NCBI RefSeq assembly: GCF_021028975.2
Contig: NC_059428.1
Location: 8,432,001 to 8,496,000, forward strand
Reading direction: 5' to 3'
DNA: 64,000 bases
Origin: Sphaerodactylus townsendi
Lineage: Eukaryota
A program made the position numbers and the translations under genes. Under the pieces are notes generated by a model. That model was given only the letters and a program-made list of their open reading frames with translations. It ran no database searches and had not been told where the DNA came from. Shown in pieces: positions 6,894 through 35,500 of the stretch (position 1 is its first letter; every line of letters starts with the position of its first letter).

Positions 6894-6899
6894 GGCGCT

Positions 6900-8100: not shown

Positions 8101-8477
8101 GGGGGGGGGGTTGATGCTGGTTGCTATGGGAACTGCATCCCTGCCCTGGGTACCCGCCGAGGATGCTGCAGGGAGAGGGGATTGGCAGGAGGGGGAGTGG
8201 GCTGCGCAGCCTCGCCCCCCAAGACATTCTGTGCTGGTGGGGGGCTTCCTCGAGGGAGGCTCCTGCAGGCCCAGCCTCCCCCCCTCCCCCCCCCCACAGC
8301 CCTCTGTCTCCAGGGCAAGTGGCAGACCAGGCCCAAGTGCCGCCTCCCTGGCAACAGAGGCGGGGGATGGAGGTTGCCTGGGCTTACTCACAGGTCCCCC
8401 CTCAGCATTTCACTCATCCTTTTTAGCAGGGGCAACCCCAGAGCTGTCCGCAGCTGGCGGCTCCTCCCCTTCCCCTG

Positions 8478-12320: not shown

Positions 12321-13750
12321 GGGGCGGGGCTTCGGACATGGACCAGGACTCCTTGGAAGAGCTTTGTGGACGGACAGGCGCTCGGGGGTGTGCTGGCCCC
12401 CAGGAAGGATGGGGCCAGTGCCCCAGGGCCTCCGCTTCGACCTGCCCCTCCCGCCCCCACTCGTGGAGGAGCGCAGAAGTGGGTACCCGCGGTTGGGGCA
12501 TGGGGGTGGGGGCAGCTGCCCCAGGAATGTTTCCGGCCTGGTTGTGTGGAGGCGCATCCCCGCCTTTGGAGAGGAGCTCCGACGGCTCCTCAGCCCCCGC
12601 CCCCCCCCGCCACTCGGCTGCAGAAGCTCCCCCGCCCCGCGGGTTCCAAGCCACCAGCCAGCCCCACTTGGAAGCAGACGGGCGGGCGCGGCAGGCAGGC
12701 GGGCGGGCGGGCGGGTGGCCCGCCAGCTGCAGCAGGAGAGGAATGCGGCCGGGCCGGCTCCCTCGGCGGAGGCTCCGGCTCCAGCTCCGCCTGCTCCCTC
12801 CCTCCCTGCCTCCCTCCGGCTGAAGCCCACGACCTGGACGGCGGCCGCTGCCTTTCCCGCGCGGCGGGGGCGCCCTCGGGAGGGAGGGAGGAGGGCCAGC
12901 CAGGCGGGTAGGGCGCCCCTCCCCTCGCCCGCGCACGGAGCTGCCGCGGGCCTGCCTGGGACCGGCAGCGACGCCCCCCCCCCCCCCGCCAAGCCGCCGC
13001 GTGTGGCCTCCCCGTCACCCGCGCCCGCCCCCTCCGAAGCGCGGCGCAGCCCTGCCAAGCGCCCCCCTCCCCGCCCCGGAGTGGGCAGCCGGTTCCCTGC
13101 TCCCCCCCCCGCCCCCCGTCCGGCTGCTGGACCCCCGTCGTCGTCGTCGTCACCTGGGCTGTGGCCAGGAAGCGCCTCCCGGACCGGAGGGGCGCAACTC
13201 CGGGCAGGCAGGGGCAGGGCAGCAGCCTGGGCGCCGGAGCAAGCGCCGGGCCAGCCCCGTCGAGGCCAGCCCCGCAGAGGCCGAGCCAAACGCACACCCC
13301 GCCCGCCCGGCGCACCGGCTGCCTGCCTCCGCCGCCAGGTCGAGCCAGCCAGCGCGGGGGCTCTTCCGACCGGGGGCCTCCCCCCCCCCGCACCCTAGCT
13401 CCCCGGGGAGCCGTCGGGCACTCTGCCCGTGGCTCCCGCACTGGGTGGGGGGGCAGAGCCGCATCTGCTCCGGCGGGAACCCCCTCCAGGGCCTTGGCCA
13501 GATTCAGCGCGCTCAGACCAGTGGCAGGCAGGACCAACCCAGCCCGAGAGACCCCCGTCCCACCAACAACCCGCAGCCCCCCCCCCCCCGTGGAAGCTCC
13601 CATGTTGGCGGTGGGGGGAGAAGATACCTCAGTTCTGCTGGTGTCGAGGTCAGGAAGGGGGGGGAAGCACTGGATCCAGCTGTGAGGGTTCCTGGCGCCC
13701 GCCCACCCCCCCCCCAGGGTGGACGAAAGTTGATGCCCAGCTGCCATTCT
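12300..13750. promoter_or_regulatory. Second CpG island (orphan, or distal TRIM3 promoter)
   Basis: Dense CpG; candidate minus-strand donor CAG|gtgacg with exon end at 13154; no recognisable coding exon. Confidence 0.55.
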
Positions 13751-14675
13751 GAAGTGAGCCGCCCTCTCCAAAGCTGACCCCCGACAATCCCCTGGGAGGA
13801 GGAACAGCGAAGAGAGACCCCAGGAATGACTGCTTGGGGCACAGACCCCGGCCTCTCCCCAGGAGACTGTCCAGGCAGTGGGGGCAGCGGATGGATTGGC
13901 TGGCCTTTCACAGTGCCAACATTGTGCAATTGTGGGTCAACTGTGTGGGCTTCGTGTGGGGGATGCTGTTTGATGATGTTGCAGAGTCTCCCTTGTAAGC
14001 TGTGCTGCTGCCACATGGTCAGACAAATAAAGATGCCGAAGGGAACGGCCGGGAGGGTGTTTTTCCAGGCGTCTCACACTTCTAACCTTAGCTGCTGAAG
14101 CTTTACAAAGGGGGAGGGTCTGGACTCTGGACTAGGTGTGTGCCGAGTGGACTGGGGCAGGAAATCTCACAGCAACCCACAGCCTCCGCTTAGATCGACC
14201 CCCCCCTCTCCCCCAGAGATGCCAGAAACCCCCTGGTCCCTGCTGCTAACAACCTCATAAGGCTACCTGCATTACTTTCTTTCCTTAGCCTTTATTTGGC
14301 ATAAAACAAATAAAATAAAATCCTATCAAAAATACAGAACTTATAATAAAAGCAGTATTCAAATATGTAGCATAAGTGCAGGCTACTGGATATACATCAC
14401 TTCCAATAAAAATTATGCTACCGTTTCACAAGTTGTGAGATCAGAATTATCCAGTAAAAAAAGGAGTCTGCAGGGAGCCTCCATTTCATCAGGAATCAGA
14501 GAAAACATATTAGAATATTTTAATCTAATATTTGCCGACTCGGGGCAGAACAATTGATGTATCAATATTTCAATTTGTTGTTTGTTACAAGAGCAGAACT
14601 CCCTTTCACTCGTTTCTACGTTGTTGAATCTACCACGCAATAAAGCAGAGGGGCTACTGGCATTACCAAATGGGA

Positions 14676-17121: not shown

Positions 17122-17520
17122 AGCACCTGGTCTGCTAAGGCATTTGCAACCTCAGATCAAGGAGGATCAAGATTGGGAGCCATAAATCGACTTCTCCTCC
17201 ATAAATCTGTCCAAGCCCCTTTTAAAGCTATCCAGGTTAGTGGCCATCACCACCTGCTGTGGCAGCATATTCCAAACACCAATCCCACGTTGCGTGAAGA
17301 AGCGTTTCCTTTTATTAGTCCTAATTCTTCCCCCCAGCATTTTCAATGGATGCCCCCTGGTTCTAGGATTGCGAGAAAGAGAGAAAAATTTCTCTCTGTC
17401 CACATTTTCTAACCCAGGCATAATTTTACAGACTTCAATCCTCTCCCCCCTCAGACGTCTCCTCTCCAAACTAAAGAGCCCCAAACGCTGCAGCCTCTCC
17501 TCATAGGGAAAGTGCTCCAC
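16960..17520 (-). mobile_element. CR1 LINE 3' end with ORF2 C-terminus
   Basis: YEERLQRLGLFSLERRRLRG...RTRGHPLK...FFTQR..VWNMLP...FKRGLDRFM; (TTCTTATG)n tail. Confidence 0.92.
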
Positions 17521-17738
17521 CAAAGGCCTCCGTCACTTTGCACCACTGGGATTGGTTGACATCAAAAGTGTGGCAAGGATTTTCCTTCCTGCCTCTTCTC
17601 ACCCCACCCCCACCATTAAAAATCGTGTCATGGAAAAGTCCCTCTGAGATACCCCCCACCCCCCAAAAAACAGCATTAGGTGGGAGCCAGGATTCCAACT
17701 TTGCTCAAATCCAGCCCAGGCAGTAAAGACTCAAACCA

Positions 17739-17744
17739 TTTATT
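17739..17744 (-). terminator. Candidate polyadenylation signal of the FHDC1-like gene
   Basis: AATAAA on minus strand about 350 nt after the stop codon. Confidence 0.6.
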
Positions 17745-18091: not shown

Positions 18092-18682
18092 TCAGCCCTC
18101 AGACGGGGACTGTCCTTTATCTCCAACGCTCAGCCTGCGGAAGAATCCCACCAGCCCAGAGCCCTCCTGGGGGGATCCTGGGGGGGTCGCTGCTGCTGCT
18201 GCCCCTGGGAGGAGCTTCCTTTGGAAAAGAGTGGGGAAGCGGAGGCCCTGGGGGGCGCCTGGCGAAGGGAGCTCCTTGGAGGGCTCCAGCAGAGGCGACC
18301 TCAGCAACGCCTTGAGGCCCTGTCCGAAGCGCCTGCCCCGCTTGGCCTTGCTGGGGGGAGCCGACGCGGGGAGAGCTGCTGTGGGCGGCTCTTGCAGGGA
18401 AGGCTGGGAGCCGGGGGACAGCAGGGTGAGCGTGTGCCTCCGCCTGGGGGGCAACGGCCTCTCTCGGGGCTGGGGGCTGCCTGGGCAGGGGTGAGGCCCC
18501 CGCAGGGAGCGGCCGCCCTGGCCAGGACGAAGCGCCCCCAGGAAGAGCAGGTCCAGCTGCATGTCCAGCAGGTCAGGATCCCGGGCGGAGCACGTGGCGA
18601 TGGAGCGCCGCTGCCTCTTCTCCCGGCGCACCTGCTCCTGCTGCTGGCGCCGCCGCTCCGTCGCCTCCCGAGCCTGGTTCTC
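18092..18682 (-). CDS. FHDC1-like last coding exon
   Basis: [30 protein letters not shown]...[21 protein letters not shown]; TGA at 18092-18094. Confidence 0.85.
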   Translation of the reverse strand, partial: ENQAREATERRRQQQEQVRREKRQRRSIATCSARDPDLLDMQLDLLFLGALRPGQGGRSLRGPHPCPGSPQPRERPLPPRRRHTLTLLSPGSQPSLQEPPTAALPASAPPSKAKRGRRFGQGLKALLRSPLLEPSKELPSPGAPQGLRFPTLFQRKLLPGAAAAATPPGSPQEGSGLVGFFRRLSVGDKGQSPSEG

Positions 18683-21600
18683 CTGCCGGTGGGGAAGGAG
18701 GAAAGGAGGAGGGCTGCCACCTGGCCCTCCCGTTCAGACCGGCCGGCCCCTGAGGGGGATGGGGCGGGCTACGCCCTGCTACCCCAGCATGCTTTTGGGC
18801 AAGGAGATGCCCCCGCCCCCCGGCCTAGGGGTTGTCCAGTGGAGAGCCAATGGGCGCAAAGGGCACACAACATCTCCTCAAGGTTCAGTCTGTCCCTGAA
18901 AAGCAGGAATTTGGCACCAGGGCCCAAGCTGGGGGGTTTAAACCGCCCCCCCCCCGAGCCCCTGTTCCCTACACAGACAACCCAGACAACACAGACAACT
19001 ACACAGTAAGCCAGTGGAAGGGCGACTGCCCACAGCCACGTTCTGCTAGTTCCCTCCCAGTAACTTGCATCATGACTATACTGGTCAGCCACACTAAAAA
19101 CTGGGCAACTGCACTGGTCATTCAAATAAGGGTGGCCCACTGAGAAGGGAGGCAGCAGGGAGGGAGGACGAGAGGCCACCGGGGGGGGGCAACTCTTTGC
19201 GGGCAACAACCCAGCGCAGCACCCACCTGAGCCGCGAGAAGGAAGCGCTCCCCAAACGCCTGGAAGATGCGGCAGCACTCGGCCAGGCTGAAGGCCTCTG
19301 GCTCCTCGCAGAAGAAGTTGCAGAGCGTGGCCGTGGCTCGCTTCAGGTCGTCCAGCGAGGCCCCCACAAGGCTCAGCTCCGCCTCCGCCACGTGCAGGAA
19401 CGGCTCCATCTGGGCCTTCAAGTCCAGGGCCTCCAGCCCCTCCCGAGCCCCCACGACTCGCTGGCCCAGCCGATGCAGCTCCGCCGCAACCTCTGGACCC
19501 ACAATCCTGGTGGGAAGAGACGCGGATCCTTGCAGGACGGAACCCGGGGCGGGGGGGGGGGGAGCGCTGAGGAGGCTCTTTTTGCTTGGGGGGAGGAGCG
19601 TGGCCTTGCTCCACTGGGCACTAAGAGCCAGCTCTCCCCCTCTCTAACGGAAGGAGTGCCCCCCCTATTGCAGCCTTTCTGGGCAGTCACGGTGTGTGCC
19701 CACCCCCTCTAAAGGACTTTATAAAGAAAAACCCAGCAGGGGACTGACTGTTTGGGCCAATAACAGGCCACCGGGATGGTGGTGGCAGCAGCAGCAGCAA
19801 GGGGCTCCAGCAAGGTGGCAGCAGCCAGCCAAAAGGGCACTCGGCCACTGGGCCTCTAGCGGCCGAGCCAGCCTCAGGATCACGGAGCCCCCCTGGGCCC
19901 GGGGTTGGCCAGCTGCGTCCCCTGCAGTTTCCCTCTCCCTCCCTTGGGAAGGGCCAGTCGGCATCAGCCACGCAGGAGGGGTCCAGACAGGCCCTCAAGC
20001 AAAAGGGACCCTCCCAGAAAGCCCATCGTTCTGTGTCTGCTCGCGGGGAGAAAACCCTCCTGGCACAACTGGGGACGTCAAGGTTGGTGGGTTCTGACGG
20101 TCCCAACGTCCCCTGTTGCCCACAGCAACGCCACGTGCCCCTCTGCCCAAAAGATCAGCCCAGCCCCCTCCCTCTGCAGCATTCAAGACCTCCCTGGGCC
20201 CTGCTGATTCGGGGGCGCGGATGTCCAGACCTCTCACTGGGCCTATGCAGAAGATCCTCCAGCTGCAAAGTGGCCTACGAGAGACCCCACCCCCCCCACC
20301 CCCCCGGGGGCTCCCCCAAGCCCTGGAGGTGGTCATCGGTGAAAGCCCACCGAATATCCACCAAGGCCTGGAATGGCTCTATCCAGTCAGAGGTCGGCTT
20401 TGTCCATCCGGCAGGCCGGATATGGACAGGGATGCTGCTGCTGCCGCTGCAGGGTCAGGTCTTCCTGCCAAGGAGTGCCTCTGCCTCCTCCGCCAATCAG
20501 GAGTCGGTGCGCCCAGCACCCACCAGGCAGCTGGGGGTGTGGCTGGGGGTGGCTCCTCCCCTGACCCCAGGGCCTCGTGGGTGGCGGCACCGACTTCTCC
20601 TGACAAGGTGTTGCTGGAACCCTTCGCTGCAGCTGTCTTCTTGCCTGAAAGGACTGTGGGAAGGAGCGCCCCGTCCCCTGTGCCCGGCCAGCCTGGCTGT
20701 GCTCGACTGGAGCCAGGGGCAGGAAAGCACTCACATCTATTTCGCCGGGGAGGGGGTGGGAGGGACCGGCAGAAGGGCACTTGGCCCATTGGGTCATAAT
20801 CTCCTGTGGGGGCGGGTGGGCGGGTGGAGGGATGTTCAAAATAAGAAGATCTCTCAAACTTAAACCTCTCTCTCCCACCCCCCCAGATGCGTATGGGGGG
20901 GATGGCGCCCGAATACAACCCCTTCTCTGGGCACCCCCTCTGTGGGTGCTCTGAGCCCCACCCCCACAACCTGCATAAAGGGTGGGGCTCGCCCGCCCCC
21001 CCCCAATGACCAAAAGGCGTGTACGCCTCTGCACTCCCCACACTCCTGCCGCCCTGGACCAATTCAAGGGCTGTGGGCAAAACCACACCCAGGTCACAAA
21101 AAGAGGGGAATAAATGCAAACAGATACATGAACAGTGACTTGGTTCAAGTCCCCTTGGGCAGTTTTGGGAGGTCACTTCTGGCCCAGGTGAAATGCCAGG
21201 AAACCGGCGGTCATGTCAGCCATCTTCTACTCTACGGCATGAAGCCTCCGGAAGCCCAACGGCCAGGCCTCCCAGAGCGAGCAGGACCACCACCCCCACC
21301 CGCGCCCAGGCAGAGAAGGGAAGGGGGTGCCCTCCTTACCGCGAGGCCGGCCCAACATGGGGGAGCTTCCTGGGGAAGAAGAGAAGTCGCGGGTCTTTCT
21401 TCTCCGCCTCCTGCGCAAAGCAAAGGGAAAGCGTCCCTGAGTCAGTCGCTCTTTGGAGGCCGCTGGTGCGAGAGGTGGCTCCGGAGTCTGGGCCTGCGCT
21501 GGGCCAGCTGAGCCCCCTTCCCTTCCCTTCCGCCTCCCCAAGAGCCACCCTGCTGAGCTGCTGTGCAGACCGGGTCCAGAAGCTCCCAGTAGCCGTGCAG

Positions 21601-24600
21601 ACCCCAAACAAGGGGCTCCTGTTCCCCCACCTGAGAGATGACATTTTCCAAGCTGCTGAAAAGTTGGTCCAAGGTCTCATTACGGAAAGCCCAGCAAGGA
21701 AAGGGCTGAGGTTGGGCAGCGAAGGACAGCCATTCTGCGAGGGGCTTATCTCTGCCTGCGTCAGCAAGGGGGCCAAAATGCCTTTGTGGCGAAAGGGCTG
21801 CCCTCCTTCCCCTACAGCCCCCAACTGCAGCCATTCTCCCCCTTCCCCACCCCACTCCAAGAAGGGCAGCTAGTCACCCCTCTGGGAAATGGGAGCCAGA
21901 GGCCAGGGAGTGGCCGGGGCCAGAGGGCTCCGGGGCGACACTAGAACCCCTGAATCCTTTCCACAGGCATTTCTACGCATCCAATATTTATAAAACTGAT
22001 CTTTTGTATTACTTAAGTGCAACACTTCATACTCATTAAACGCCCTTTAACTTGCCTGGGCCCAGTCCTGCCTCCTGTCGAAGCCCAACTGCATCCCAGC
22101 TCTGCCTTCCAAGGTATTGAACCCCCCCCCCCCAGTTCAGCGTCATCCAGACTTGATGCGCACCTTTCTGCGCTCCCTTCTCTAAGTCATCTATAAAGCT
22201 GTTAAACGGCACCAGGCCCAAAACAGAACTCTGAGGCATCCGACCCGTCACCTCCCTCCAGGCCGATGGGAAGCCACAAAGCCTCACCCCTGGGTTCAGC
22301 CGGCCACTCAGGCCTTGATTCACCCCCCAGAGACTGGGCTTCCTGTCAGAGTCTGGGGCTTCTGTCCTGCGTCCTGCCTCATTCACATGCCTGGCAGTAT
22401 CTACGTCCTGTCATCCTGCTTGCTGCTTTGCAGGTAAAGAGGCCCCCCCAGCTGGAGGGCGGGAAGCTGAAGGGCAGGGGGTCATCACACAGCGGCCCCA
22501 AGGTCCGGCTCCCAGGCAACGAGAAGCGGCAGAGGTATCACCAGGGACATCCGGTGGGCCCCTCCCTGCGAGGAGCAGAGTGCTGGGCTGGCTGGACTCT
22601 GGTCTGATCCAGCCGGCTCTTTCTGATGGCCTCAGATGTCTGACATCATTACGCCTGAATGTGCACGGTTCCCGCTGGCATGAATGGCCGTTCGCCCAGC
22701 GACATGGGTAGCCCCATGTCTCCTTAGGCCATAGGTGTCAAACTCGTGCCCCTCCAGATGTTATGGACTACAATTCCCATCATCCCCTGCCAGCTCATGC
22801 TGGCAGGGGATGATGGGAACTGTAGTCCATAACATCTGGAGGGCCGCGAGTTTGACACCTGTGCCTTAGGCGGTACGCCACTGGTCTGGCATGACTTATT
22901 TCTAAGAAAGCCCTGCCGAGACTTCACCGTGCCTCTCCAAGGCTCACAGGCTCCTTCGCCATCCCATGTGCTCAGGGTTCAGAGGGGGCAGCCCAAAGTC
23001 AGGTCCCCCCCCCCGGGAAACAGAATCAGCACTTTCTTAGCAGTTCCCTCCCACAGACTCTGCTCCCCCAGAGACCCTGGGAAACGGCTCCTTAGAGACC
23101 AAGAAGATTTGGGGTGCACAAGCTTCTGAACCCCAGGGTGCCTTGGTCTGGTTCTCAAAAGCTCACCCCCCCCCAAAACCTGGTTGGTCGCTCTGGTGGG
23201 GCTCCCAGATCCCACCCCTCCCACCACCAGTGGCGGGTGAGGAGCAGGGCTGACAGATACAGGCGGAGAAACTCCTGGCACTTTAAGGGGTGGATCCTAT
23301 GTGGGACGGGGGTGCAATACCAGAGAGCCCCCCCTTCCGAGGCAGCCCTTTCCCCCAGGCAAACTGGTCTCTGTCGTCTGGCAAAGAGCTGTAATTTTGG
23401 AGGGTCCCCAGGTGCCCCCTGGAGGATGGCACCCCCACTCTCAGGCACTCCTGGATTCGACTCCAGCTCTTCCGCTGCCGACCAACATGGCCGCCTCCTG
23501 CCCCTGGTTTTAGGAACAGCCCCACCCAACCTTTGATGCCCACGGCCGGCCTGCTCTCCAAAGAGGGCCCCCAACGTGGCGAGCCTCCAAACCGCTTCCT
23601 TTCCCTTCCCTTTGGGACTGACTGGAGAACGCCAGGTGGGCCACGAGCGGAGCAGGGAATCGCCAAGCGCCCCCCACGACTCACCAGCGCCACGAAGTGC
23701 AGCAAGTCCACGCCAGGCCTGTTGGCTTTGGTGTCGGCCAGCCGGAGCAGCGAAGACATGTGGAAGCCGAGGGCAGAGCCGGCGTAGCCTCCCTGCGGGT
23801 GGGGCACGAAAACGGGAAGCCGCCAGTGGGACAGCCCCCGGCCAGAGCCCCCCCTTGCACAGACGCGCACCTCTGGCCCCCAGAGCCCCAAGGCCCAGAG
23901 CCCCACTGCCAGCTCCTCCGGGTCCCTGGCCAGCCGAAGGAGCCCCTGGCCCAGGCCTAAGCGGCTGGAGGAGGGGTTGTCTCCTGCCCAGGTTGCCCCG
24001 CTCTGTCCATCCCGAGCCGGGTACCTCATTCATGTAGTTGCCAGCCTCCAGGACCAGCCGGATGACGTCATGGAGCTCTTCGCAGCCCAGCAGCTCTGTG
24101 GGGGAGGGAGGGGGAGGGGCTGCGTGGGGACATCTTTGCCCTCCCCACAGTCTGGGGACTGAGGTGCTGACCTGTTGATAGGGGGTGGGGCAAGGAAGAG
24201 CAATGGGGAGCCCCCCCCTGGCCACCCCCAGCCCCCACAAGGCAGACTGGAGCGCAACCCACCCACCCCCATCCCTTTGTATTTTGCACTTTCGCAAGCA
24301 CAGCGGAGCCCCCCCTCACCCCGAGGAGGGCCCATCAGGCCCACGCCCGAGTCTCTCAGGACAGAACAGTCCAGCCCAGAGCCCCCCCCCCAGCCCCCCC
24401 AACTTTGCCCACCTGCAGCTGCCTCTGCCATGGTCTGGATGGCCGACCGCAGGGCACTGAGATGCGGGAAGAACTCCTCCTTCAGCACCAGCAGCTCCAA
24501 GCGGTGGGCATAGCTGGGAAAGGCAAAGGCAGCATGGGGCCCCCTGCCAGAGCAGTGCCAGGAAGGGCCCCCCTCGCCACACCGGCCCCCCCCCCCCCCC

Positions 24601-27600
24601 GCCCTCACCTGGGCACCTGGACCAGCAGCAGGGCGAAGACCTCGGCCTCGGAGAGCTGGCTCGGGCTCCCCTGGAACGCCAGCAGCCTCTGGACCTTCCC
24701 AAACAGAAGCAAGCGGGTCACTCCCGCTGGGGAGCAAAGCAGCGGCCCCGGCCCCTCCCCACTCCTCCCCTGCTGCTCACCTCTTCCCCGTCGGGCAGCA
24801 GCTTGGTCAGCTCCAGCAGCTTCTCTGCCCCATAGAGAGCCCCGGCTCCATCCCGGATGTCGGCCACGATTGCTTGCACAGGCCTGGGGGGAGGGACAGC
24901 GGTGGCTGGCAGGCAGGCAGGCACTGTGGGGGGACCCTCCGCACCCAGCCCACAGGAGGGGCCCCCCTGACCCAGAGCCCTCCAGCAGGGGCTCAGGCTC
25001 CCCCCCACCCCCACCCCCCGGGCCTCCACTCTACCTTTTGAACTGCTTCAGGAAGATGCCCAGGTTCAGAATCCTTTTGGAGTCCAGCAGAGAGGCCTGT
25101 GGGAGTTGGGGGGGGGGGGAGGCAGCCCAGGTGAGGAGAAGGACAACCTGCCCGCTCGCCTGCAGCCACCCTGGAAGCGCCACTCATCTCTGCACACACA
25201 GCCGAGCAGTGGCAGCTGCCTCCCTCCCTTTTGGGGAACCAAAATGTTGCCTTTTCATTCCTTGGCTTAATTTGGCAGAGTTTTGCTTTGCAATTTTTTT
25301 TTTTAAGTTTGGGGAGAAAAATCAATACAAATGTCACTGAAGCAGGAAAATGGGATGCACTTCTGGAGGCACCATCTCAAAAAGAACATCCCACAGCTGG
25401 AAAAGCATCAAGGGGGGGACTGGAGCAGGGGCCTGCAACCTGTGGCTCTCCAGATGTTCATGGACTACAAATTCCATGCTGGCAGGGGCTGATGGGAACT
25501 GTAGTCCATGAACATCTGGAGAGCCACAGCTGCAGGCCCCTGGACTGGAGAAACATTCTCTCTGTGTGGAACAGGAGCGTTTAGGGCTCTCTGGTGTAGA
25601 GAAAGGCCAGCTGGGACGGGGAGAGGTCGTGCCAGAGAAAATGATGCCCGGCGCAGACAGCAAACCTCTCCCTCTTTTCTGAAGCACGAGCAGGAGGCGG
25701 GGCTGCCAAAGGAAATGATCTGCACCATTCTTCCCCCTAACCCAGCAGGCCTCCTTCACTTCGGGAGCTGACAAACTTCGATGACTTTGAGAAGGTTCTG
25801 CAAATCCGTGGCGCACGGTTCCACCAAGGGCGCTCAGCCACAACACACGCGCACCAGAACCTTTGTGCGCTGGAGATGCCACCTCTGACTGCCGAGCCAT
25901 TCCCTTCCTGGCTACTGTGGCTGGAAACAGAGCGCCACAGACTCAGCAGGCCACCCGGTTGGCTCAGAGCTGGAGGTCTCAGCAGGCTGATCCACTGGGG
26001 CTGGGCAGAGGGCAAGCTTCCGGAGAGCCCCTCCCCCACTGACCTCGGCCTATTTATGTTCAAGGCAGTGAGGAGTGAGGGGCCCTGCCCTGCCCTGCCC
26101 ACGCACCCACCCACGGCACCTGGCCACTCTCCATTCAGGCAGGTGAGTCAAGCACATACATAGAGGAAAAGCCACACACGCCCATAGGTAAGGCACCTTC
26201 ACATTGTCTCTCCTGTGGGCCAGGGCAAGGAATCCCCCCACCTGCCAGCCAAAATATTTTGCACTGGAGAAAAGGGGCTCAGCCCAAAGGGGAAGATCCG
26301 AGCTGGTCTCTGCACCCCCCCCCCTTCCTGGGCAGCTGAGAGGAGAACTGATTTGGAGACCCCCTGCACATTCACAGGCGCATTTAGAGGTGGAGTCAAG
26401 GGTTGGGTGTGTGTGTGTGTGTGGGGGGGGGGTGTTTCTGAGTGATGCTTCTACCATCCTTTGGACAGCAGTCCTTTGGACAACTTTGCCAAGTAGGCCC
26501 ACAGGATCTAGAAATATAAGATTTCTATAAATGTTCAAGTTGCAGGGAAAAACAATACTTTTTGTAAAAAAAAACTTGAAATGGAAATATATGAAACATC
26601 CACCTACATAGCAAATCTAAACTTCTTTCACTGATTTAAAAACATAGAATGCAACCGTTATAACTTAATTAATATGTACAATTGTACTCTTTGGAGTACT
26701 TATGGAATTTGAATACATAAATGACTGTGTTTTCTGTATGAAAACTGGAAGTATCCTCAATACTTGAGAAAGGGTTCCAAACTGTTGCCCCTTGGCCAGC
26801 ATAGCACAAGCCCCCTACCCTATTTCCCCGAAAATAAGAAGGGTCTTATATTAATCTTTGCTCCAAAAGATGCGTTAGGGATTATTTTCAGGGGATGTCT
26901 TATTTTTTCCCCATGATTTTGAGCCCCCAGATCAGATCAGCTGTGCTGGGGAATCTGTAACCAGAGCTTATTTTTGGAGTAGGGCTTATATTTCAAGAAT
27001 TCTCCAAAAATCGTGGTAGGGCTTATTTTTGGGGAAGGGCTTATTTTTGAGAAAATGGTATTTTATGCCATTTGAGAGGCTGGAGAAATAGGGAAAAAAT
27101 GCCAGAGTGTGCAAAAGAAAATATAATAATTGGACAGAAACATGCTCATACATCACACTACGCTTTTTCTCAACGAAAGATAACAGGAGATTTGTGAATT
27201 AATCCACCATTTCCTGGACTTTCTGTGTTCTAGTTTGCTCCACTTGGGGGTCCTAGTGCCGACCTAGTTCTCAGCCCAGGGCTCTAGGACCCAAGCACAG
27301 CATTCCATAACAAAGACGGTCCAGAAAATGGCGGATTCATATACCATTCTACTGTCATCTTTATCTGGACATGAAGTTAAAGTTGTTAACAATGAAAACA
27401 GTGAACTCTTGGATAGTGTATTGTCCTTCAACGCACAATAGCATATTAATCGTTGCCAAAATTATTTCCATTTAAGCAAAAATATTTATTAATTTATTTG
27501 ACTTCTACGTCATCTTCCCCTTTGAACAGGCTGAGAGCAGGTTACAACAGCTACGATTTACAACATTAAAATCAACCAGAGGTAAAAACATAATCTCTGC

Positions 27601-29694
27601 ACCCCAGAACTAACAGGCAGGAGACCAATCAGGAGGGAAAGCAAATGAATCAAGGGCACAAAACAAACAGAAAAAGGGGCAGGAAGGAAGAGGGAGGAGG
27701 AGAGAGGCCAGCTGAGTCGGATACTGTTGCTGCTGTCGGCCACTGGGGCCGTGGTGGCGAACCTTTGGCACTCCAGATGTTATGGACTACAATTCCCATC
27801 AGCCCCTGCCAGCATGGCCAATTGGCCATCCCTCAGGGGATGGGGCGGTATAAAAGTTTAAATAATAAATAAATAAAAAATAAATAAATGCTAGGAGAGA
27901 GAGACAATATTCAAGCAGGCAGGAGTGCATCAAGTGCTAGAGATAATAGTCTGAAGGTGATACAGACAAGAACCCTGAAGAAGAAGAAAAAGAAAAAGAA
28001 GAAAAAGAAGAAGAGGAGGAGGAGGAGGAGGAGTTTGGATTTATATCCCCCCTTTTTCTCCTGCAGGAGACTCAAAGGGGCTGACAATCTCCTTGCCCTT
28101 CCCCCCTCACAACAACACCCTGTGAGGTGGGTGGGGCTGAGAGAGCTCCTAAAAGCTGTGACTAGCCCAAGGTCACCCAGCTGGCATGTGTGGGAGTGCA
28201 CAGGCTAATCTGAATTCCCCAGAGAAGCCTCCACAGCTCAGGCGAATCAAACCCGGTTCCTCCAGATTAGATACATGAGCTCTTAACCTCACTACGCCAC
28301 TGCTTTAAGAAGCAGCCGTGGGGAATGAACCGCGGTCCTAGATGTCTCTACACTAATGAACAAGAGCACGGGAAATAAACAAGACCAACTTAACCTCTTA
28401 ACCGGGCAAAGCAAATATGGGATAACGGGCAGCACTGAAACCTGGTGGTGGGACGAGTCTCGTGGTCGGAATGTAATAGTGGAGGGGCATCACATATATT
28501 TAGAAAAACAGACCCACTAGGAAAGGAGGAGGAGGAGTAGCATGGCAAGTCAGGGGTGATTGCACCTGTGAGCAGGTCCAGGACTTAAATCCTGGAAGCC
28601 AGGCTTACAGCAGCTGGGTACAAATTCAGGGGAAGAGAAACAAGAGTGATCTCATGGCAGGGGTCTCTCACAGACCCCCCAAGCCAGACTGAAGAGCTGG
28701 ACGATGCCTTCTTGGAACAGATGGCCAAAGGTTCAGAAAGAAGGTCCCGGTAGCAGTAATGGGAGATTTCAATTACCTGATATTTGCTGGGAATCCAACT
28801 CTGCTGTCAAGACTACAAGACCAACAGATTCCTCCCTGGCCCGGCGGGCAGCTTCATGGTCCAGAAGGCGGAAGAGGACCAACTACCTTAGATCTATTCC
28901 TATCCAGCAATGATGACCCGGTTAATGGGGGGCAGTGGTGGGGGCCCCAGAACAAGGGAGAGACCGTCTTCTCAGGCAGTTTGTTCATCCTGGGCAGAAG
29001 CGGGCAGTGGGGCGCCGCCGCCACAGACAGGAGCAGACCCCGCCCCCGCCCCCCCCGTCAAGACTCCAGAGCAACCGAGTCACCTGAAGACCGAGGGGGA
29101 GGAACCGCCCGTCCCGTCCCTCCGAAGGCAGGCCGACCGAGCAGCCGCCCGCCAAAAGCGCAGGCCGGAGCGGAGGCGGCCATAGGAGCCGGGCAACAGC
29201 CAGCCAGCCAACAGCCCCGGCCCGACGGCAGCCCCGGGGTGGAGTCACGGTTCACGGGGAGGGGGCTCCCGGCCGCCAGGACTCCCCGCCACGTCGGGCC
29301 TCTCCCGCCCCTTCCTCACCTGGTGGGCGGACGGACCACGCAGGCTCCCCCCGGCCGCTCCCGACGGCTGCCCGAAGAGCTCGTCCAGCAAGCGCCGGTC
29401 CAGGCCGAAGCCGCCCGGCCTGCTGCTGCCGCCGCCCGGCGTGGTCCAGAGGCTGCTTCGGCCCCCGCGCACCCGCTCGGCCGGCAGCACCTCCCAGTGG
29501 AAGGTGCGCAGCTTGCGACGGGCGGGCGTCGGGCTCCGGGCAGGCGGCGGCGGCGGAGGGGCCGGAGGGCTGGGCCCGGGTCGGCCGCCTGGGGCCCCGC
29601 GGCCCGGGGGAGGAGAGGCGGGGGAGCGGTCGGGGGTCGCCGCCGCCTCCTCCCGGGCCTCGGGCGACGACGGGGCGTCCCGCACCAGCACCAT
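18092..29694 (-). CDS. FH2 domain-containing formin, FHDC1(INF1)-like paralogue; 10 coding exons, 1848 nt, 615 aa
   Basis: Exons 29320-29694, 25035-25096, 24781-24883, 24609-24694, 24413-24513, 24025-24095, 23685-23792, 21340-21410, 19227-19506 and 18092-18682. All are GT-AG and join in frame with no stops. Motifs: polyproline FH1, [70 protein letters not shown]...ECCRIF. Confidence 0.92.
19227..19506 (-). CDS. FHDC1-like exon 9
   Basis: [13 protein letters not shown]...QMEPFL...[33 protein letters not shown]. Confidence 0.9.
21340..21410 (-). CDS. FHDC1-like exon 8
   Basis: [23 protein letters not shown](R). Confidence 0.88.
22050..22400 (-). mobile_element. Decayed CR1 RT fragment
   Basis: [29 protein letters not shown]; further fragment [11 protein letters not shown] at about 22875-22930. 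Confidence 0.7.
22730..22863. mobile_element. Palindromic hAT MITE
   Basis: TIR CAYAGGTGTCAAACTCG; TSD CCTTAGGC on both sides. Confidence 0.9.
23685..23792 (-). CDS. FHDC1-like exon 7
   Basis: [36 protein letters not shown]. Confidence 0.92.
24025..24095 (-). CDS. FHDC1-like exon 6
   Basis: [23 protein letters not shown] (GNYMN post motif). Confidence 0.92.
24413..24513 (-). CDS. FHDC1-like exon 5
   Basis: [33 protein letters not shown]. Confidence 0.9.
24609..24694 (-). CDS. FHDC1-like exon 4
   Basis: [28 protein letters not shown]. Confidence 0.9.
24781..24883 (-). CDS. FHDC1-like exon 3
   Basis: [34 protein letters not shown]. Confidence 0.9.
25035..25096 (-). CDS. FHDC1-like exon 2
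   Basis: [20 protein letters not shown]. Confidence 0.9.
25426..25542. mobile_element. Palindromic hAT MITE
   Basis: TIR CAGGGGCCTGCA; TSD GACTGGAG on both sides. Confidence 0.9.
26818..27058. mobile_element. Non-autonomous Tc1/mariner (pogo/Tigger-like) element
   Basis: Imperfect TIR CC.TATTTCCCCGAAAATAAG / CTTATTTTTGAGAAAATGG flanked by TA on both sides; internal GGGCTTATTTT repeats. Confidence 0.65.
27749..27830. mobile_element. Truncated (half) hAT MITE
   Basis: Left arm only of the 3417/5941 family. Confidence 0.75.
27977..28303 (-). mobile_element. tRNA-derived SINE with expanded (GAA/GAG)n tail
   Basis: Same family as 1549-1842. Confidence 0.85.
28330..28990 (+). mobile_element. 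Decayed CR1 endonuclease fragment
   Basis: CLYTN, ETWW and VMGDFNY(P)DICW motifs of CR1 APE endonuclease. Confidence 0.75.
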
Positions 29695-30330
29695 CGTCCG
29701 GCAGGCGCCGCCGGCCTCCTCCTTCCGCGTTCTCGACGGCGGCCCGCGCTCCTCGGGGGTCTAGCCGGCGCCTGAGCCAAGCCCCGCCCCGCCCCGCCCC
29801 GCCGGGGGCTCCCGCCGGCCCCTCCCCCACCCGCGCGGCGGCGGGTCAGTCTCCTCTGAGCAAGGCCGGCCTTCCCGGGCGACGACGGGGCTCCAGGCGC
29901 GGGGGGGCACCCTCCGGATTCCGCCTCTCCTCCTCGGCCCCAAGGGCAGCCGCCTGGGCATGTGCAGAGTGCGCAGCCCTCGCAACGGCGCTTGGGCCAT
30001 CATAGGATCCCCCTTTCCCAGGCGCAGGACCGGACGGACGACAGCCCCAACCTCCCGGGCGACGCTGCCTGCCTAGCCCCGGGCCTCCACCCCCCCCCAC
30101 GTGCCCGCCGCCTGGGACAGGGGCCGTTTGGAGGCCTTTGCGGCGGACTCGGCCCCTCTTGGCCACCCGCGGCTTAAGGGGAGAGAGGGGGGGTCACGGG
30201 GGGGGGGCTTCCCAGGGATTCTCCAGTTCTCCACAGCCGCTGTAACCAGCACAACTTTACACCATTGTGGGGGTGGGGAGAGAGACTTTAATGGCCCGCA
30301 GATGCGCCAGAGGTCACTGCACCCCCCCCC
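29000..30330 (-). promoter_or_regulatory. CpG island and promoter of the FHDC1-like gene
   Basis: Dense CpG and GC boxes (GGGGCGGGGC repeats around 29780-29800) covering and upstream of exon 1. Confidence 0.7.
29320..29694 (-). CDS. FHDC1-like exon 1 (FH1 + FH2 lasso)
   Basis: MVLVRD...[10 protein letters not shown]...[25 protein letters not shown]...LDELFGQ; donor CAG|gtgagg. The start codon choice is less certain than the donor. Confidence 0.85.
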
Positions 30331-31697: not shown

Positions 31698-32412
31698 CTG
31701 GAATCTTTACAGACTGTAGTAGGCATTGGGGGGGGGGGCTTCACTGGGCAGGAAGAGGAGCTGGACCCTCCCCCACGCAGCAGTTCCCACCCCCCTCAGG
31801 AACGTCAGAGGGGGCTACTGGCCTTGATCCCTCCCAGAGCCCCTCGGCCCCCGGGCAGGGTCTGGCTGGAGCTCGGTCCATAGTCCCAGGGCGCTCCAGG
31901 CTCCTCACACACCCACCCCCCCCCCCCCCCCCCAAATAGCAGCAAATGAAGACCTACGAAGGCCTTCTCCAGCCCTCAGCCAGAGCCCCCTCCCCCCCCC
32001 GCTGCAGGGCAGAACAGTGGGAAGAAACAGGACCTCTCCCACCCCCTGCCAGATTCTGGCCAGGAAGGGGGCGGGGAGGCTCTTCTGCCAGGCCCCCCCC
32101 CCCCCCAGTCCTGGCTGAGGGAGGGCTGGAAATGTCTTTGAACGGCGGGGGGGGGTGTGGGGGGAGGCTGCCCAGGCCTCCTGGAGCGGAGGAGGCAGTG
32201 CCTTTCTCCAGGAAGCGCCCCTTGGAGCACTCCGCTAAACCAGTGCTTAGAAAAAAAGCGAGGGAGGGCCACAGCAGGGGGGGCAGGTGGAGTACAGGCC
32301 CTCAGCTAGGAGGTGGGGGAGGAGATCCCCTGCTGGTCCCGGCAGGTCAAGAGTCCTTGGAGTCCCTTGGAGCAGAGGGCAGGGGGGGGAGCATGGCCGA
32401 GGGAGCTCAGGT

Positions 32413-32570
32413 TCACTGCTCTCTCCAGCCAGGAGGGCTTGGCCAGGCGCCGGGCTCTTCAGCTTGACGCTGAACTGCCGCAGGCTCTGCTCCAGCTGCT
32501 GCTGGTTGCCGGCGAAGTAGGCGGAGATGGCGTTGTGGAAGAGCAGCAGCTGCTTGTGCATCACCTTCAC
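32413..32570 (-). CDS. ARFIP2: ARFIP2 last coding exon
   Basis: [38 protein letters not shown].../KPSWLE/EQ*. Confidence 0.85.
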
Positions 32571-35500
32571 CTGGGGGGGGGAGGGAGGGAGCCGGTCAGC
32601 CGGAGGCCCCACCCTCCTCGCTGGGCAACCCACATCCCCACAGGAGAAGTCCAGCCGCCTCCTACTGCAGCCCCACCCAGCTTGCTGGCGGGGGGCAAAG
32701 GGTGCTCCTGGGAGGTGTGGGGGTGAGCAGCCGCTCCCCCACCCGCACCACCGCCCTGCCTTGTTCTCCCTCCAGGAACTTCAGCTTGATGACCGCGTCG
32801 GCCACTTCCGCAGCCTTCAATCATACTTGGCGGAGGTGGGCTGGGGTTAGCTGGCGTCCAAAGCGGTGCAGAAGGGTGCATCCCCTGTGAACCCCGAGTC
32901 TCAGTTCCTCCAGGTCTGTGCGGTAGGCATCGTACTCCAGCCTGTGGGATGAGGGGGGGGGGGCAGAGGAGCAGGCGAGTGAGGGAGAGAGGGAGGTCTT
33001 GTATTCCTGCCAGTCCCAGCTGGTGCCCCCCCTAAAAAGCCTGGCCCGGCAGGGCCCCACCTGGCCGCCTCGTAGTGCTTGACCGTCATGAGGGTGTCCT
33101 CCATGGTCTTGTTGACCAGGGTGTTGATGCTGGACACGAAGAAGTTGACAGCCCCCAGGAGCGTCTCTCCGTTCTTGCAGAGCAACTTCTGGGTTTCTGC
33201 GTTGTACCCAAACTCCTCCTGTGAGAGAGGGGAGCCAAGGGGAGGGGGGTTGGTTGGGAGATGCCCAGAAAGAGCCCCTTTCCCTAAGACCCCTCACCCC
33301 TGACTCCACAGGCCTTCTGCAGGAGGCCAGCCCCCAAGCTGTTCAGGCTGCTGCGTCCCACGAAACCTCCCCACGTCAACAGTGGTGCACGTGAGCTCGC
33401 CCGTTCCATCCTCAGCTTCTGCGGGGGGGGGGGGCAGAAGAGGCCCACCCTCTGACTTTGCACCAGCCGCATTTTGCAGGCATTTCATCTTCCATGCAAA
33501 ACCAAGGCCAAGTTTCAGGCTCAGCAGGAGGATCACAGGACACACCCACACACCATACTAGGCTGTGCCTTGCTGTGCTTTGGGTGGGGTTGCGGGGTGC
33601 GGTTGGATTCAGTGGGATAGCAGCATAGGGCGGCCCCTTCTCTGCCCTTCTGGAACAGGTGCAAAATGGAGGGTCTTTTTTGATGGGGGCTGTTTGGTTC
33701 TGGAACTCCTTCTGTTGGATCTGCATTCCCGAAGCTTCCTGCAAACCTCCCAACCCCCGTTCAAGCTGGTGGGAGGCAGCTGCTAACTCCCTATGAAGAG
33801 TGAATCTACCACTAGAGCCTGCTGCTGTGTCTGGGGATCAGGAAAGGAGCTGCAGGTGATATCTCAACCGAATACTTGGCCTGGTAGTAAGCACAGGACA
33901 CCAGAGGAGAGCAGGGCGAGAAGGCAGGCCCTGGCAGAAAGCCCGGAAGGGCCCACGGACAAAGGACGTCTGGCAGGGAAGTGTCAGGATTCGCAAGAAA
34001 AGATCGCAGAGACCATGCTGCTGTGTGAGATCGAGGATGACTCACTAACATCCTTGGTACAAGATTTTGCAGAGTTTCAGGCAAGGGAGCTTTCTGCCGC
34101 ACCTTGGGCATAACCAGCCTTGCAGTAGGGGCTGGAGAGGGACCGAGTCTGGCCAGTGTCCTGCAAGCGCCGTGTGGTGTACCATTGTCTCTCCCACAGG
34201 ACAGGAACTGTGCGCACATGCGTCGTCTTGTAGTAACTGGCTGGCTTGAGAATTAAAATAATAATTCACTTGGTTTGCAAGAAACTTTGATTTCAGCGAG
34301 CCGGACCAGAGTTTTTTCTGTCAGCTAAGCAGGCCATATGGAACAGGATGCCGAGCACCTTCGCCCAGACTACTGGGGAGGTGTTGGCTCAGAATCTGGA
34401 GTTCAGACTGAGAACCAGGTAACTCCTCCAGGAGAAGAACTGAAGGCAACTGGGCTGACTCATTGCCAGCTAGGGGCCAAGTGCAATTGGTCAAAGAACT
34501 TCAAAAGGGGAGTCTGCAANNNNNNNNNNNNNNNNNNNNNNNNNNNNNNNNNNNNNNNNNNNNNNNNNNNNNNNNNNNNNNNNNNNNNNNNNNNNNNNNN
34601 NNNNNNNNNNNNNNNNNNNNNNNNNNNNNNNNNNNNNNNNNNNNNNNNNNNNNNNNNNNNNNNNNNNNNNNNNNNNNNNNNNNNNNNNNNNNNNNNNNNN
34701 NNNNNNNNNNNNNNNNNNNNNNNNNNNNNNNNNNNATATTTGCTATTGTAACCAACCATTTCATATTTAAGTTTTAGTTGTTATAGAAAAATAATCATTC
34801 ATATAGATTTTATATGTCAGCACGAGGATTTCAAGCTCACTGTTTCAACTCTCTCCTTGGAAATGAGATAAGCAATCGTCCCACTCGAATGCTTCCAAGA
34901 CCCCCAGCCCCACCCCCAGATCACAGAAGCTTTAAACAGTCAGCCCTGCCTCTTTTTTTAAAAAGGCAGTCATTATTTGCACATTATTTGCAGGAGAAAT
35001 GTCCCAAGTGCGCACCTTGTTGATAAGCAGGTACGGGAAGAGTTCTAGGCGTTGCTTTGTGATGTCAGCTTGGAGATATCAATGAGAATTTTTTGTTTTC
35101 CACAGTCCAGCCCCTGCCTGCTCATTTGAGATGGCGGAGTAACACGTTTGACGCACGGAGCTGTGAGCTACAACTGTGGGCAAGACCTTCAGGAACCAGC
35201 CAGAACTGCCAACTTCTGGGCTGAGAGTTCCTCTCCCGCCACGGAGAGCCCAGGGTCTCGCGGCTGGAGGGCATCAGGCTGAGGACGGTGGAAATAATCC
35301 CTGTGGAATTCTACCCCCCTCCTCTTTTCCCTCCTGTAAGGAAATTCAAGGCCGCTGACAAGCTCCTTTCCCTTCCTCTCCCCACAACAGACACCTTGGC
35401 CAGAGGCAGGTGGGGCTGAGAGAATTAGGAGAAGGAGCATGACTTCTGGCACCAAGGTCACCCAGCAGGAATGTAGGAGTCACGGAAGCTGCATCTGGTT

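Follow-up and report, generated by a model that had tools for sequence, protein, structure and literature searches.

Why does a complete formin gene lie between an arfaptin gene and a TRIM gene in the gecko Sphaerodactylus townsendi, and is it FHDC1 under another address, a copy in decay, or a formin of its own? In human, as reported in earlier papers, the order is TRIM3, ARFIP2, TIMM10B, and DNHD1, with no formin (PMC4074351), as an earlier note on this DNA had stated. The reading that we favor, and to which we assign a probability of roughly 0.88, is that the gene is the S. townsendi ortholog of fish fhdc3, a functional FHDC formin that stems from an ancient duplication of an ARFIP-FHDC-TRIM cassette and that was not found in mammals.

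Structure of the gene

The gene occupies positions 29694 to 18092 on the minus strand of the window, by which we mean the whole stretch of 64,000 nucleotides that was analyzed. Its model was rebuilt by hand from three minus-strand reading frames, with the joined sequence taken from window DNA, and it describes an FH1-FH2 formin of 10 exons in which the coding pieces sum to 1848 nt, that is, 615 codons plus a single terminal stop, with GT-AG boundaries at 9/9 introns. Rebuilding reproduced exactly the coordinates, exon count, and protein length given in the earlier note.

The exons, all on the minus strand, divide the protein as follows. Exon 1 (29320 to 29694) holds the start codon, a short FH1 with a six-proline run (residues 46 to 51), and the FH2 lasso with its conserved Trp66 and Trp83, and exon 2 (25035 to 25096) encodes the FH2 knob helix with a conserved Ile (GIFL, residue 139). 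The FH2 domain continues through exons 3 (24781 to 24883), 4 (24609 to 24694), and 5 (24413 to 24513); through exon 6 (24025 to 24095), which contains the GNYMN motif at residue 261; through exon 7 (23685 to 23792), which contains the post region and the conserved Lys of DTK (residue 288); and through exon 8 (21340 to 21410) and exon 9 (19227 to 19506), the latter encoding the C-terminal third of the domain. Exon 10 (18092 to 18682) completes the FH2 and adds a coiled-coil stretch, a 196-aa tail rich in Pro, Arg, and Leu, and the stop codon at 18094 to 18092. A CpG island at 29000 to 30200 (GC, 0.74 to 0.83; CpG observed/expected, 0.67 to 0.99) covers exon 1 and the presumed promoter, and two AATAAA candidate polyadenylation sites lie on the coding (minus) strand within 17311 to 17744, 348 and 776 nt beyond the stop codon; both the island and a candidate signal had been described in the earlier note.

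The nine junctions, expression, and the polyadenylation site are predictions supported by the RefSeq model along with sequence conservation and consensus splice sites. The four sequencing runs that we found contain the introns too and so are all genomic DNA; their read alignments show no junctions, only variants and a very high-copy repeat inside intron 7. Elsewhere in the window, open reading frames at 41 to 44 kb, 17.2 to 17.5 kb, and 63.4 to 63.6 kb gave zero Pfam matches.

A gene already annotated

Is this formin uncharacterized, as had been supposed? It is not. The gene is already annotated in RefSeq with exactly the same structure, our model matching the S. townsendi entry “FH2 domain-containing protein 1-like” at all 615 residues (100% identity). 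The same label is used for its orthologs in squamates, turtles, alligator, birds, amphibians, and coelacanth, and the fish orthologs go by fhdc3; the Anolis carolinensis and Alligator database entries are even labeled “FHDC1,” and a frog ortholog is present as a spliced mRNA contig. Zebrafish has fhdc1 to fhdc5, and the yolk-blastodisc actin ring is abnormal in maternal crispants of fhdc3, a maternal-effect gene (10.1101/2021.02.19.432057). Our finding therefore leaves the annotation unchanged, given that the gene is in RefSeq already. What the labels “FHDC1-like” and “FHDC1” hide is a distinct, ancient formin, the tetrapod ortholog of fish fhdc3.

Synteny of the cassette

In the window, the formin, the arfaptin, and the TRIM2/3-type gene are co-oriented on the minus strand. 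Upstream of the formin are the last exons of an ARFIP2-type arfaptin (32247 to 33185; 40/42 identical to Arfaptin-2 in the PDB). Downstream are the first coding exons of the TRIM2/3-type gene (2742 to 6893, with its ATG at 6893), which encode a RING, a B-box, and a coiled coil, the RING and B-box exons lying at 6893 to 6762 and at 3.5 to 3.8 kb, and which run off the window. TIMM10B, recognized by its Tim10/DDP zinc finger, lies on the plus strand at 52844 to 53164, on the head-to-head side of ARFIP2, and its presence identifies human 11p15.4 as the corresponding region. Based on the company of ARFIP2 and TIMM10B, we assign the flanking TRIM gene to TRIM3 by synteny, although its two N-terminal exons score higher against human TRIM2 than against human TRIM3 (83 versus 73 bits and 72 versus 56 bits).

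How widely is this arrangement shared? The hawk Accipiter has TIMM10B, arfaptin, FH2, and TRIM in succession, and the geckos Gekko and Paroedura have arfaptin, FH2, and TRIM. Scleropages fhdc3 and an Alosa clade-3 gene each have an arfaptin directly upstream, with TRIM3 beyond the reach of the 10 kb inspected, and the arfaptins at these loci have five last-exon residues of the ARFIP2 type in common. Duck FHDC1 is preceded by an ARFIP1-type arfaptin, and so the proposal that an ARFIP2-formin-TRIM3 cassette mirrors ARFIP1-FHDC1-TRIM2 is borne out in the window, the hawk, and the two geckos on one side and in the duck on the other. The electric eel fhdc2 locus has no arfaptin neighbor within 10 kb and has an SLBP-like gene downstream; no neighbors were seen within 10 kb of Xenopus L, the X. 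laevis “FHDC1,” skate fhdc2, or a teleost gene of the FHDC1 clade.

The FH1-FH2 domain and the tail

The whole protein matches the Pfam FH2 profile (PF02181) with 214.8 bits against a cutoff of 34.8, over profile positions 4 to 371 of 372 and residues 55 to 414. Exon by exon, the FH2 matches are weak or none, and exon 9 alone gave no useful match in the PDB. Among solved structures, the closest to the protein is the FH2 of INF2 (E, 5e-46), followed by mDia1. The actin-contact landmarks W66, W83, I139, GNYMN261, and K288 are kept in an alignment with FHDC1, fhdc2, and fhdc3; we take these lasso, knob, GNxMN, and post residues to have the functional meaning assigned to them in Bni1p and mDia1. 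Only 54 residues stand ahead of the FH2, and Pfam detects no other domain, which corresponds to the inverted FHDC layout without GBD, DID, or DAD. The FH1 is minimal by comparison with most formins, its one six-proline run lying in a Pro-rich stretch (residues 24 to 56) N-terminal to the FH2.

Its sequence indicates that the gene encodes a functional member of the FHDC group of inverted formins, for which actin nucleation is predicted. In a mechanism modeled on the family, the protein would work without an N-terminal GTPase-binding or inhibitory domain, its single proline run would supply profilin-actin to a dimeric FH2 ring, and the ring would nucleate actin filaments and ride their barbed ends. 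We speculate that regulation probably resides in the short basic tail, with its conserved basophilic-kinase-like sites and C-terminal amphipathic motif. Tail motifs at residues 444, 500, and 599 occur in 18/20, 20/20, and 17/20 members of the fhdc3 clade, respectively, and in 0/8 FHDC1 proteins; they are conserved from teleosts to the gecko, and fhdc2-type formins lack them. These clade-specific motifs open a way to test how an inverted formin might be controlled without autoinhibitory domains.

Three vertebrate FHDC clades

A maximum likelihood tree of 79 FH2 domains, built with a mixture model and rooted on invertebrate INF-type sequences, which fall outside all three FHDC clades, recovers FHDC1 (support, 100/99), an fhdc2-type clade (93/86), and an fhdc3/L clade that includes the window gene (100/99). 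The last comprises 46 rows, namely, the window gene, the other sauropsids (100/100), amphibians, Latimeria, and teleost fhdc3, and it returns at 100/99 in a 33-row tree. The fhdc2-type clade is its sister (100/97), and the topology is thus FHDC1,(fhdc2,fhdc3). Chondrichthyans fall within the fhdc2 clade, and hence the split is older than the divergence of bony and cartilaginous fish; the sampled fhdc3 clade has no cartilaginous-fish member. Where the earlier note had proposed a “sister ohnologue of FHDC1,” the gene does prove to be an ancient duplicate of FHDC1, but the sister is not FHDC1, since the fhdc2-type formins are nearer.

Proposed origin by duplication and probable absence from mammals

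In the model that we favor, duplication of an ancestral ARFIP-FHDC-TRIM cassette would predate the divergence of jawed vertebrates, the simplest setting being the two rounds of genome duplication in vertebrates (2R), and would have given rise to ARFIP1-FHDC1-TRIM2 and ARFIP2-FHDC3-TRIM3. The comparison that bears on a putative paralogon covers three linked gene pairs in the same order and orientation, with a split that predates the jawed-vertebrate radiation. FHDC3 persists today in ray-finned fish and coelacanth, in amphibians, and, among sauropsids, in turtles, crocodilians, birds, and squamates. A mammalian ortholog was not found in protein-database searches and the literature, where published formin inventories cover human, mouse, and opossum; for these three species, FHDC1 and INF2 are the sole entries of the INF subtype (PMC5047451, S1 Table). 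If this model is right, then studies of FHDC1 in human and mouse sample one-third of the ancestral FHDC genes, and the zebrafish fhdc3 phenotypes would have no direct counterpart in mammals.

Given its relationship to zebrafish fhdc3, our best guess is that the gene acts on cortical actin in the egg and early embryo. Can this be carried further? We offer, as a tentative idea that is rather doubtful at present and that we did not encounter in the literature searched, that ancestral jawed vertebrates possessed three FHDC formins of which mammals kept FHDC1 alone, losing both the FHDC3 linked to ARFIP2 and TRIM3 and the fhdc2 type, that FHDC3 may be an egg and early-embryo cortical-actin formin whose retention tracks large yolky eggs, that its tail motifs may form a regulatory switch, and that its loss may belong among yolk-related gene losses. 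If true, the disappearance of FHDC3 would join those other losses, whether it dates to the mammalian stem or to therians.

Alternative explanations

Could the gene simply be FHDC1, either its ortholog or a recent squamate-specific copy that landed beside TRIM3? The database names, “FHDC1-like” in general and “FHDC1” in A. carolinensis and Alligator, would suggest so, but the idea retains next to no credibility once the two genes are compared. They fall into separate clades, each supported at 100/99, and an AU test (33 rows, LG+G4) rejects a single clade of sauropsid L and amniote FHDC1 (delta lnL, 184; p-AU, 1e-48), so that the phylogenetic check proposed in the earlier note returns a paralog of FHDC1, not an ortholog. 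Individual turtle and bird species have both FHDC1 and the L gene (the matches listed for a search with a bird FHDC1 protein were taken up by birds and turtles), the same cassette is present in birds and fish, and the neighbors differ, ARFIP1-type for FHDC1 as opposed to ARFIP2-type, with TIMM10B, for the window gene. The proteins differ too, at about 1140 aa and 615 aa, and their tail motifs are not the same. Orthology to FHDC1 is refuted by the clade support, the AU test, the ARFIP2-type and TIMM10B neighbors, and the length of 615 aa. A less remote but still unlikely alternative concerns the manner of duplication: the cassette might have arisen in an ancient regional (segmental) event and not in vertebrate whole-genome duplication, which would make the gene a paralog and not a strict ohnolog. 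The comparison does extend to only three linked genes, and the three FHDC clades, in the order FHDC1,(fhdc2,fhdc3), together with an fhdc2 locus that lacks an arfaptin within the 10 kb checked, mean that a simple two-copy picture is incomplete. Nonetheless, three FHDC, two ARFIP, and two TRIM2/3 genes are what 2R followed by losses could leave, and both the age of the split, before bony and cartilaginous fish parted, and the conserved order and orientation fit 2R.

Might the gecko copy instead be decaying or unexpressed, its reading frame out of use? One could point to its pace, as its FH2 evolves about 5.7 times faster than that of FHDC1, to its minimal FH1, to dN/dS values of 0.4 to 0.6 outside the FH2, and to the fact that the sequencing runs found are of genomic DNA alone. 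We nevertheless consider this very improbable, because the open reading frame is uninterrupted, splice sites are canonical throughout, all catalytic landmarks are kept, the tail motifs have endured from teleosts to the gecko, and a CpG-island promoter is present. Furthermore, at dS values of 0.44 to 0.51, FH2 dN/dS is 0.26 against Gekko and 0.25 against Paroedura (0.40 and 0.33, respectively, for the whole protein), with 10/10 exons conserved; this check, which the earlier note had called for, indicates purifying selection. Among five exon 9 variants in other DNA runs, four are synonymous and one is V>M. We thus retain the reading of a functional fhdc3 ortholog, with the qualification that constraint, as read from the sequence comparisons, is only moderate, given the speed of the FH2 relative to FHDC1 and the dN/dS outside it.

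Comparison with known formins

Teleost fhdc3, including that of zebrafish, the only clade member with a published phenotype, is closest to the window gene: it belongs to the same clade (100/99), lies directly downstream of an ARFIP2-type arfaptin, and has an N-terminal FH1-FH2 and the three tail motifs. The fish proteins are longer (about 780 to 1040 aa versus 615), owing to a longer linker between motifs, and two proline runs are usual in them where the window protein has one; teleosts also have a second clade-3 copy, likewise beside an ARFIP2-type gene. The nearest paralogous clade, fhdc2-type, consists of teleost fhdc2, cartilaginous-fish genes, and long frog FH2 proteins, shares the inverted layout, and has proteins of 870 to 1740 aa. 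FHDC1 (INF1) resembles the window gene in its FH1-FH2 at the extreme N terminus without GBD or DID, in its intron-exon logic, and in the arfaptin-formin-TRIM order (duck locus; PMC7409263), with about 45% identity between the FH2 domains. FHDC1, retained in mammals, has a long C-terminal region that has been described as microtubule and Golgi directed (PMC4713130), whereas the window protein has its 196-aa tail with other motifs.

Two further formins merit comparison. INF2, the best solved-structure match, shares the INF subtype in a published formin phylogeny (PMC5047451) but has an N-terminal DID, a C-terminal DAD/WH2, and an FH2 that lies about 550 residues in. PHCF, the published “lost human formin,” is present in nonplacental vertebrates and missing from human (PMC5047451); it is, like the window gene, a vertebrate formin absent from human, but it belongs to the PH-domain subtype, its locus lies between MC3R and CBLN4, and the FH2 fold is the sole kinship between the two.

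An annotated gene of the FHDC family

Based on a three-frame translation of the minus strand from 18.0 to 29.8 kb, with splice sites then read from the DNA, ten separate formin-like pieces fall into a single consistent set of splice sites (minus-strand exons 1 to 10 at 29694-29320, 25096-25035, 24883-24781, 24694-24609, 24513-24413, 24095-24025, 23792-23685, 21410-21340, 19506-19227, and 18682-18092). A scripted check found AG 5' of every internal exon and GT 3' of all exons except the last, and the coding sum is 1848 nt (i.e., 615 codons plus one terminal stop). Exon 1 lies inside a CpG island (29000-30200; GC 0.74-0.83, CpG observed/expected 0.67-0.99), and AATAAA occurs 348 and 776 nt past the stop. 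The feature is real, exactly as the earlier note described it: the coordinates, exon number, and protein length, rebuilt here from the minus-strand frames, were all exact, and the canonical splice sites, the CpG island, and the candidate polyA signal were borne out. In a local comparison, the joined model is identical at 615/615 residues (100%) to P0147, a RefSeq protein of Sphaerodactylus townsendi named “FH2 domain-containing protein 1-like,” and thus the gene had already been annotated with exactly this structure. The gene looks functional and belongs to a known family, and P0147 served as the reference protein for later comparisons.

P0147 matches the Pfam FH2 profile nearly completely (214.8 bits, residues 55-414), and its nearest solved structure is the FH2 domain of INF2 (E 5e-46), followed by those of mDia1, FMNL3, and DAAM1. 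Just 54 residues precede the domain, with a single six-proline run within a Pro-rich stretch as a minimal FH1, and a Pfam search found no GBD/DID or further domain. FHDC formins of the “inverted” type share this arrangement. The actin-contacting residues of FH2 domains have been defined by work on Bni1p and mDia1; both lasso Trp residues, the knob Ile (GIFL), GNYMN, and the Lys of DTK are present in P0147, in alignment with FHDC1, fhdc2, and fhdc3.

Intron 7 contains a very high-copy interspersed repeat (22500-22900; contig depth of 1e5-1e6 versus about 20-60 elsewhere), where rearranged joints are numerous. Similar words occur at 3290-3505, 5814-6000, and 27650-27830, and the ORF-like reading of the repeat turns up several times across the window. 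Two minus-strand ORFs (17167-17523 and 63355-63633), which had no match in Pfam, resemble the C-terminal ends of LINE ORF2 proteins of a kind common in reptile genomes.

Orthology to fhdc3

Is this gene FHDC1 itself, as its database name might suggest, or an ancient duplicate? An FH2 tree of 79 proteins (454 columns; IQ-TREE, LG+C20+F+G4 PMSF; invertebrate INF-type formins as the root; support given as ultrafast bootstrap/SH-aLRT) resolves an FHDC1 clade of birds, turtles, and some teleost representatives (100/99); an fhdc2-type clade of rays and skates, paddlefish, teleost fhdc2, and frog proteins of 1200-1700 aa (93/86); and a 46-row fhdc3/L clade that holds the window gene, other sauropsids, tetrapods, coelacanth, teleost fhdc3, and a second teleost group (100/99). 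Within the last clade, sauropsids including the window gene are supported at 100/100 and tetrapods at 96/94. A placement of the window gene inside tetrapod FHDC1 is rejected by an AU test (33-row subset, LG+G4), the constrained tree being 184 log-likelihood units worse (p 1e-48); as the earlier note claimed, the gene is a paralogue and not an orthologue of FHDC1. The closest relative of the fhdc3/L clade is the fhdc2 clade (100/97), and FHDC1 branches outside the pair. The evolutionary reading in the earlier note essentially stands as regards an ancient FHDC1 duplicate, a duplicated three-gene cassette, and absence from human; it gives way on the “sister” of FHDC1, since the nearest paralogue is of the fhdc2 type.

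The long frog proteins that cluster with fish fhdc2, apart from amniote FHDC1 (handles P0040, P0036, P0055, P0064, P0065, and P0083, and locus L009), include the Xenopus laevis protein named 'FHDC1'; database names in the FHDC family do not track orthology. Amphibians are missing from the FHDC1 clade of the FH2 sample analyzed.

The 196-residue tail of P0147 has a high content of Pro, Arg, and Leu. Aligned from teleost fhdc3 to gecko, it is free-running apart from three short conserved islands, all in exon 10 (18092-18682): an RRS..TCS-type site at residue 444, shortly after FH2; an RRHT-type site at residue 500; and a GFFRRL-type motif at residue 599, about 15 residues before the end. By pattern count, these occur (in that order) in 18/20, 20/20, and 17/20 proteins of the fhdc3/L clade, in 1/8, 1/8, and 0/8 fhdc2-type proteins, and in 0/8 FHDC1 proteins, a distribution that supports fhdc3 orthology independently of the FH2 tree. 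The three motifs may be regulatory sites of this clade, and their sequences hint at regulation by basophilic kinases.

The gene cassette and its neighbors

Upstream of the formin and on the same minus strand lie arfaptin exons (32.2-33.2 kb; Pfam Arfaptin, 40/42 residues identical to Arfaptin-2) and, beyond them on the plus strand, a gene with a Tim10/DDP zinc finger, read here as TIMM10B (52.8-53.2 kb). Downstream, also on the minus strand, are TRIM2/3-type RING, B-box, and coiled-coil exons from an ATG at 6893. Because the two N-terminal exons of this gene (RING and B-box) match human TRIM2 better than human TRIM3 (83 versus 73 and 72 versus 56 bits), we call this neighbor (2742-7028, minus) TRIM3 by synteny and not by sequence; either mammalian TRIM3 is derived or the orthology of this neighbor needs a proper tree.

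The same arrangement recurs around orthologues of the window gene (L genes). The Accipiter L gene lies with TIMM10B (opposite strand), arfaptin, and a TRIM gene (B-box-filamin-NHL), and the Gekko and Paroedura L genes lie between arfaptin and TRIM. Arfaptin is immediately upstream on the same strand of Scleropages fhdc3, of an Alosa gene from the second teleost group, and of the true FHDC1 of duck. In the last arfaptin exon, one residue pattern is common to the window, the geckos, the hawk, Alosa, and Scleropages; the duck arfaptin departs from it at five positions, with residues that we take to be those of ARFIP1. This split shows two versions of the cassette, one ARFIP1-FHDC1 and the other ARFIP2-FHDC3(-TRIM3), and the proposed mirroring holds in that arfaptin types sort with formin clade. 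Among the genes in the trim2-locus synteny figure of a Xenopus TRIM2 paper are fhdc1 and arfip1 (PMC7409263). No arfaptin was found within 10 kb at the electric-eel fhdc2 locus, which has an SLBP-like gene downstream, and no neighbor was found within 10 kb of Xenopus L, X. laevis 'FHDC1', skate fhdc2, or a teleost FHDC1-clade gene.

The last ARFIP2 exon of the window (32247-32573, minus) stays open for about 60 codons beyond the conserved C terminus of Gekko, Paroedura, bird, and fish; either a C-terminal change specific to the lineage or an unrecognized further splice could account for this. A 216-N run lies within the arfaptin gene region (34520-34735). Two more GC-rich, CpG-island-like blocks (12000-14000 and 6500-8200; GC 0.67-0.84) lie in the interval from the 3' end of the formin to the start of TRIM coding. 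The block closer to TRIM (6500-8200) spans its first coding exon, and the 12-14 kb block is a possible upstream promoter or 5'UTR exon of TRIM.

Distribution and prior descriptions

Searches were made exon by exon (Pfam with each exon; PDB and representative proteins with exon 9). Exon 9 retrieved 137 cluster representatives, at the top squamate proteins labeled “FHDC1-like,” “hypothetical,” or “uncharacterized,” and next lungfish, coelacanth, salamander, and fish proteins, including “FH2 domain containing 3”. A 649-aa agamid orthologue, searched against proteins of about 357-1136 residues, retrieved “FHDC1-like” proteins of many squamates, turtles, alligator, several birds, many amphibians, and coelacanth, as well as fish fhdc3 and fhdc2, with no mammal among the 120 matches listed (E down to about 1e-101). 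A bird FHDC1 query retrieved the true FHDC1 (about 1140 aa) of birds and turtles, and both genes are present together in Emydura, Haliaeetus, and Sarcoramphus.

In keeping with the claimed absence of the formin from human, a published human copy number variation gene list has HPX, TRIM3, ARFIP2, TIMM10B, and DNHD1 in order, with nothing between TRIM3 and ARFIP2 (PMC4074351). The INF subtype of the main animal-formin phylogeny contains zebrafish FHDC1-4 and, for human, mouse, and opossum, FHDC1 and INF2 only (PMC5047451 S1 Table). The “lost human formin” of that study, PHCF, is a different gene, near MC3R/CBLN4. In the full-text literature searched, we found no paper on FHDC3 in tetrapods, on the placement of the gene between ARFIP2 and TRIM3, or on its lack in mammals. 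The gene is not “uncharacterized,” because it is the orthologue of fhdc3, one of the zebrafish genes fhdc1-5; fhdc3 is maternally expressed, and maternal crispants over-constrict the actin ring where yolk and blastodisc meet (10.1101/2021.02.19.432057).

Constraint, rate, and transcription

All ten exons were recovered in order at the Gekko and Paroedura loci. The dN/dS ratio (Nei-Gojobori; window gene versus Gekko and Paroedura, respectively) is 0.26 and 0.25 in FH2 (dS 0.44 and 0.51), 0.40 and 0.33 over the whole protein, and 0.58 and 0.39 outside FH2. DNA runs from another individual and a closely related organism show five differences in exon 9, four of them synonymous and the fifth a V to M change. 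Along the turtle-to-bird path of the FH2 tree, fhdc3/L accumulated 1.05-1.08 substitutions per site versus 0.185 for FHDC1, i.e., it evolved about 5.7 times faster. Bird fhdc3/L has a long stem (0.43), a knob Ile changed to Val, GNYMN changed to GNHLN/GNYLN, and a skewed amino acid composition.

A 2545-nt Logan contig (SRR5149423) has an uninterrupted ORF of 554 aa that aligns over exons 2-10, with about 85% identity to orthologues of hyloid frogs, which makes the contig a spliced frog mRNA. This is indirect evidence for transcription within the fhdc3/L clade. A gecko-like contig of 2122 nt also reads through the exon 9/10 junction.
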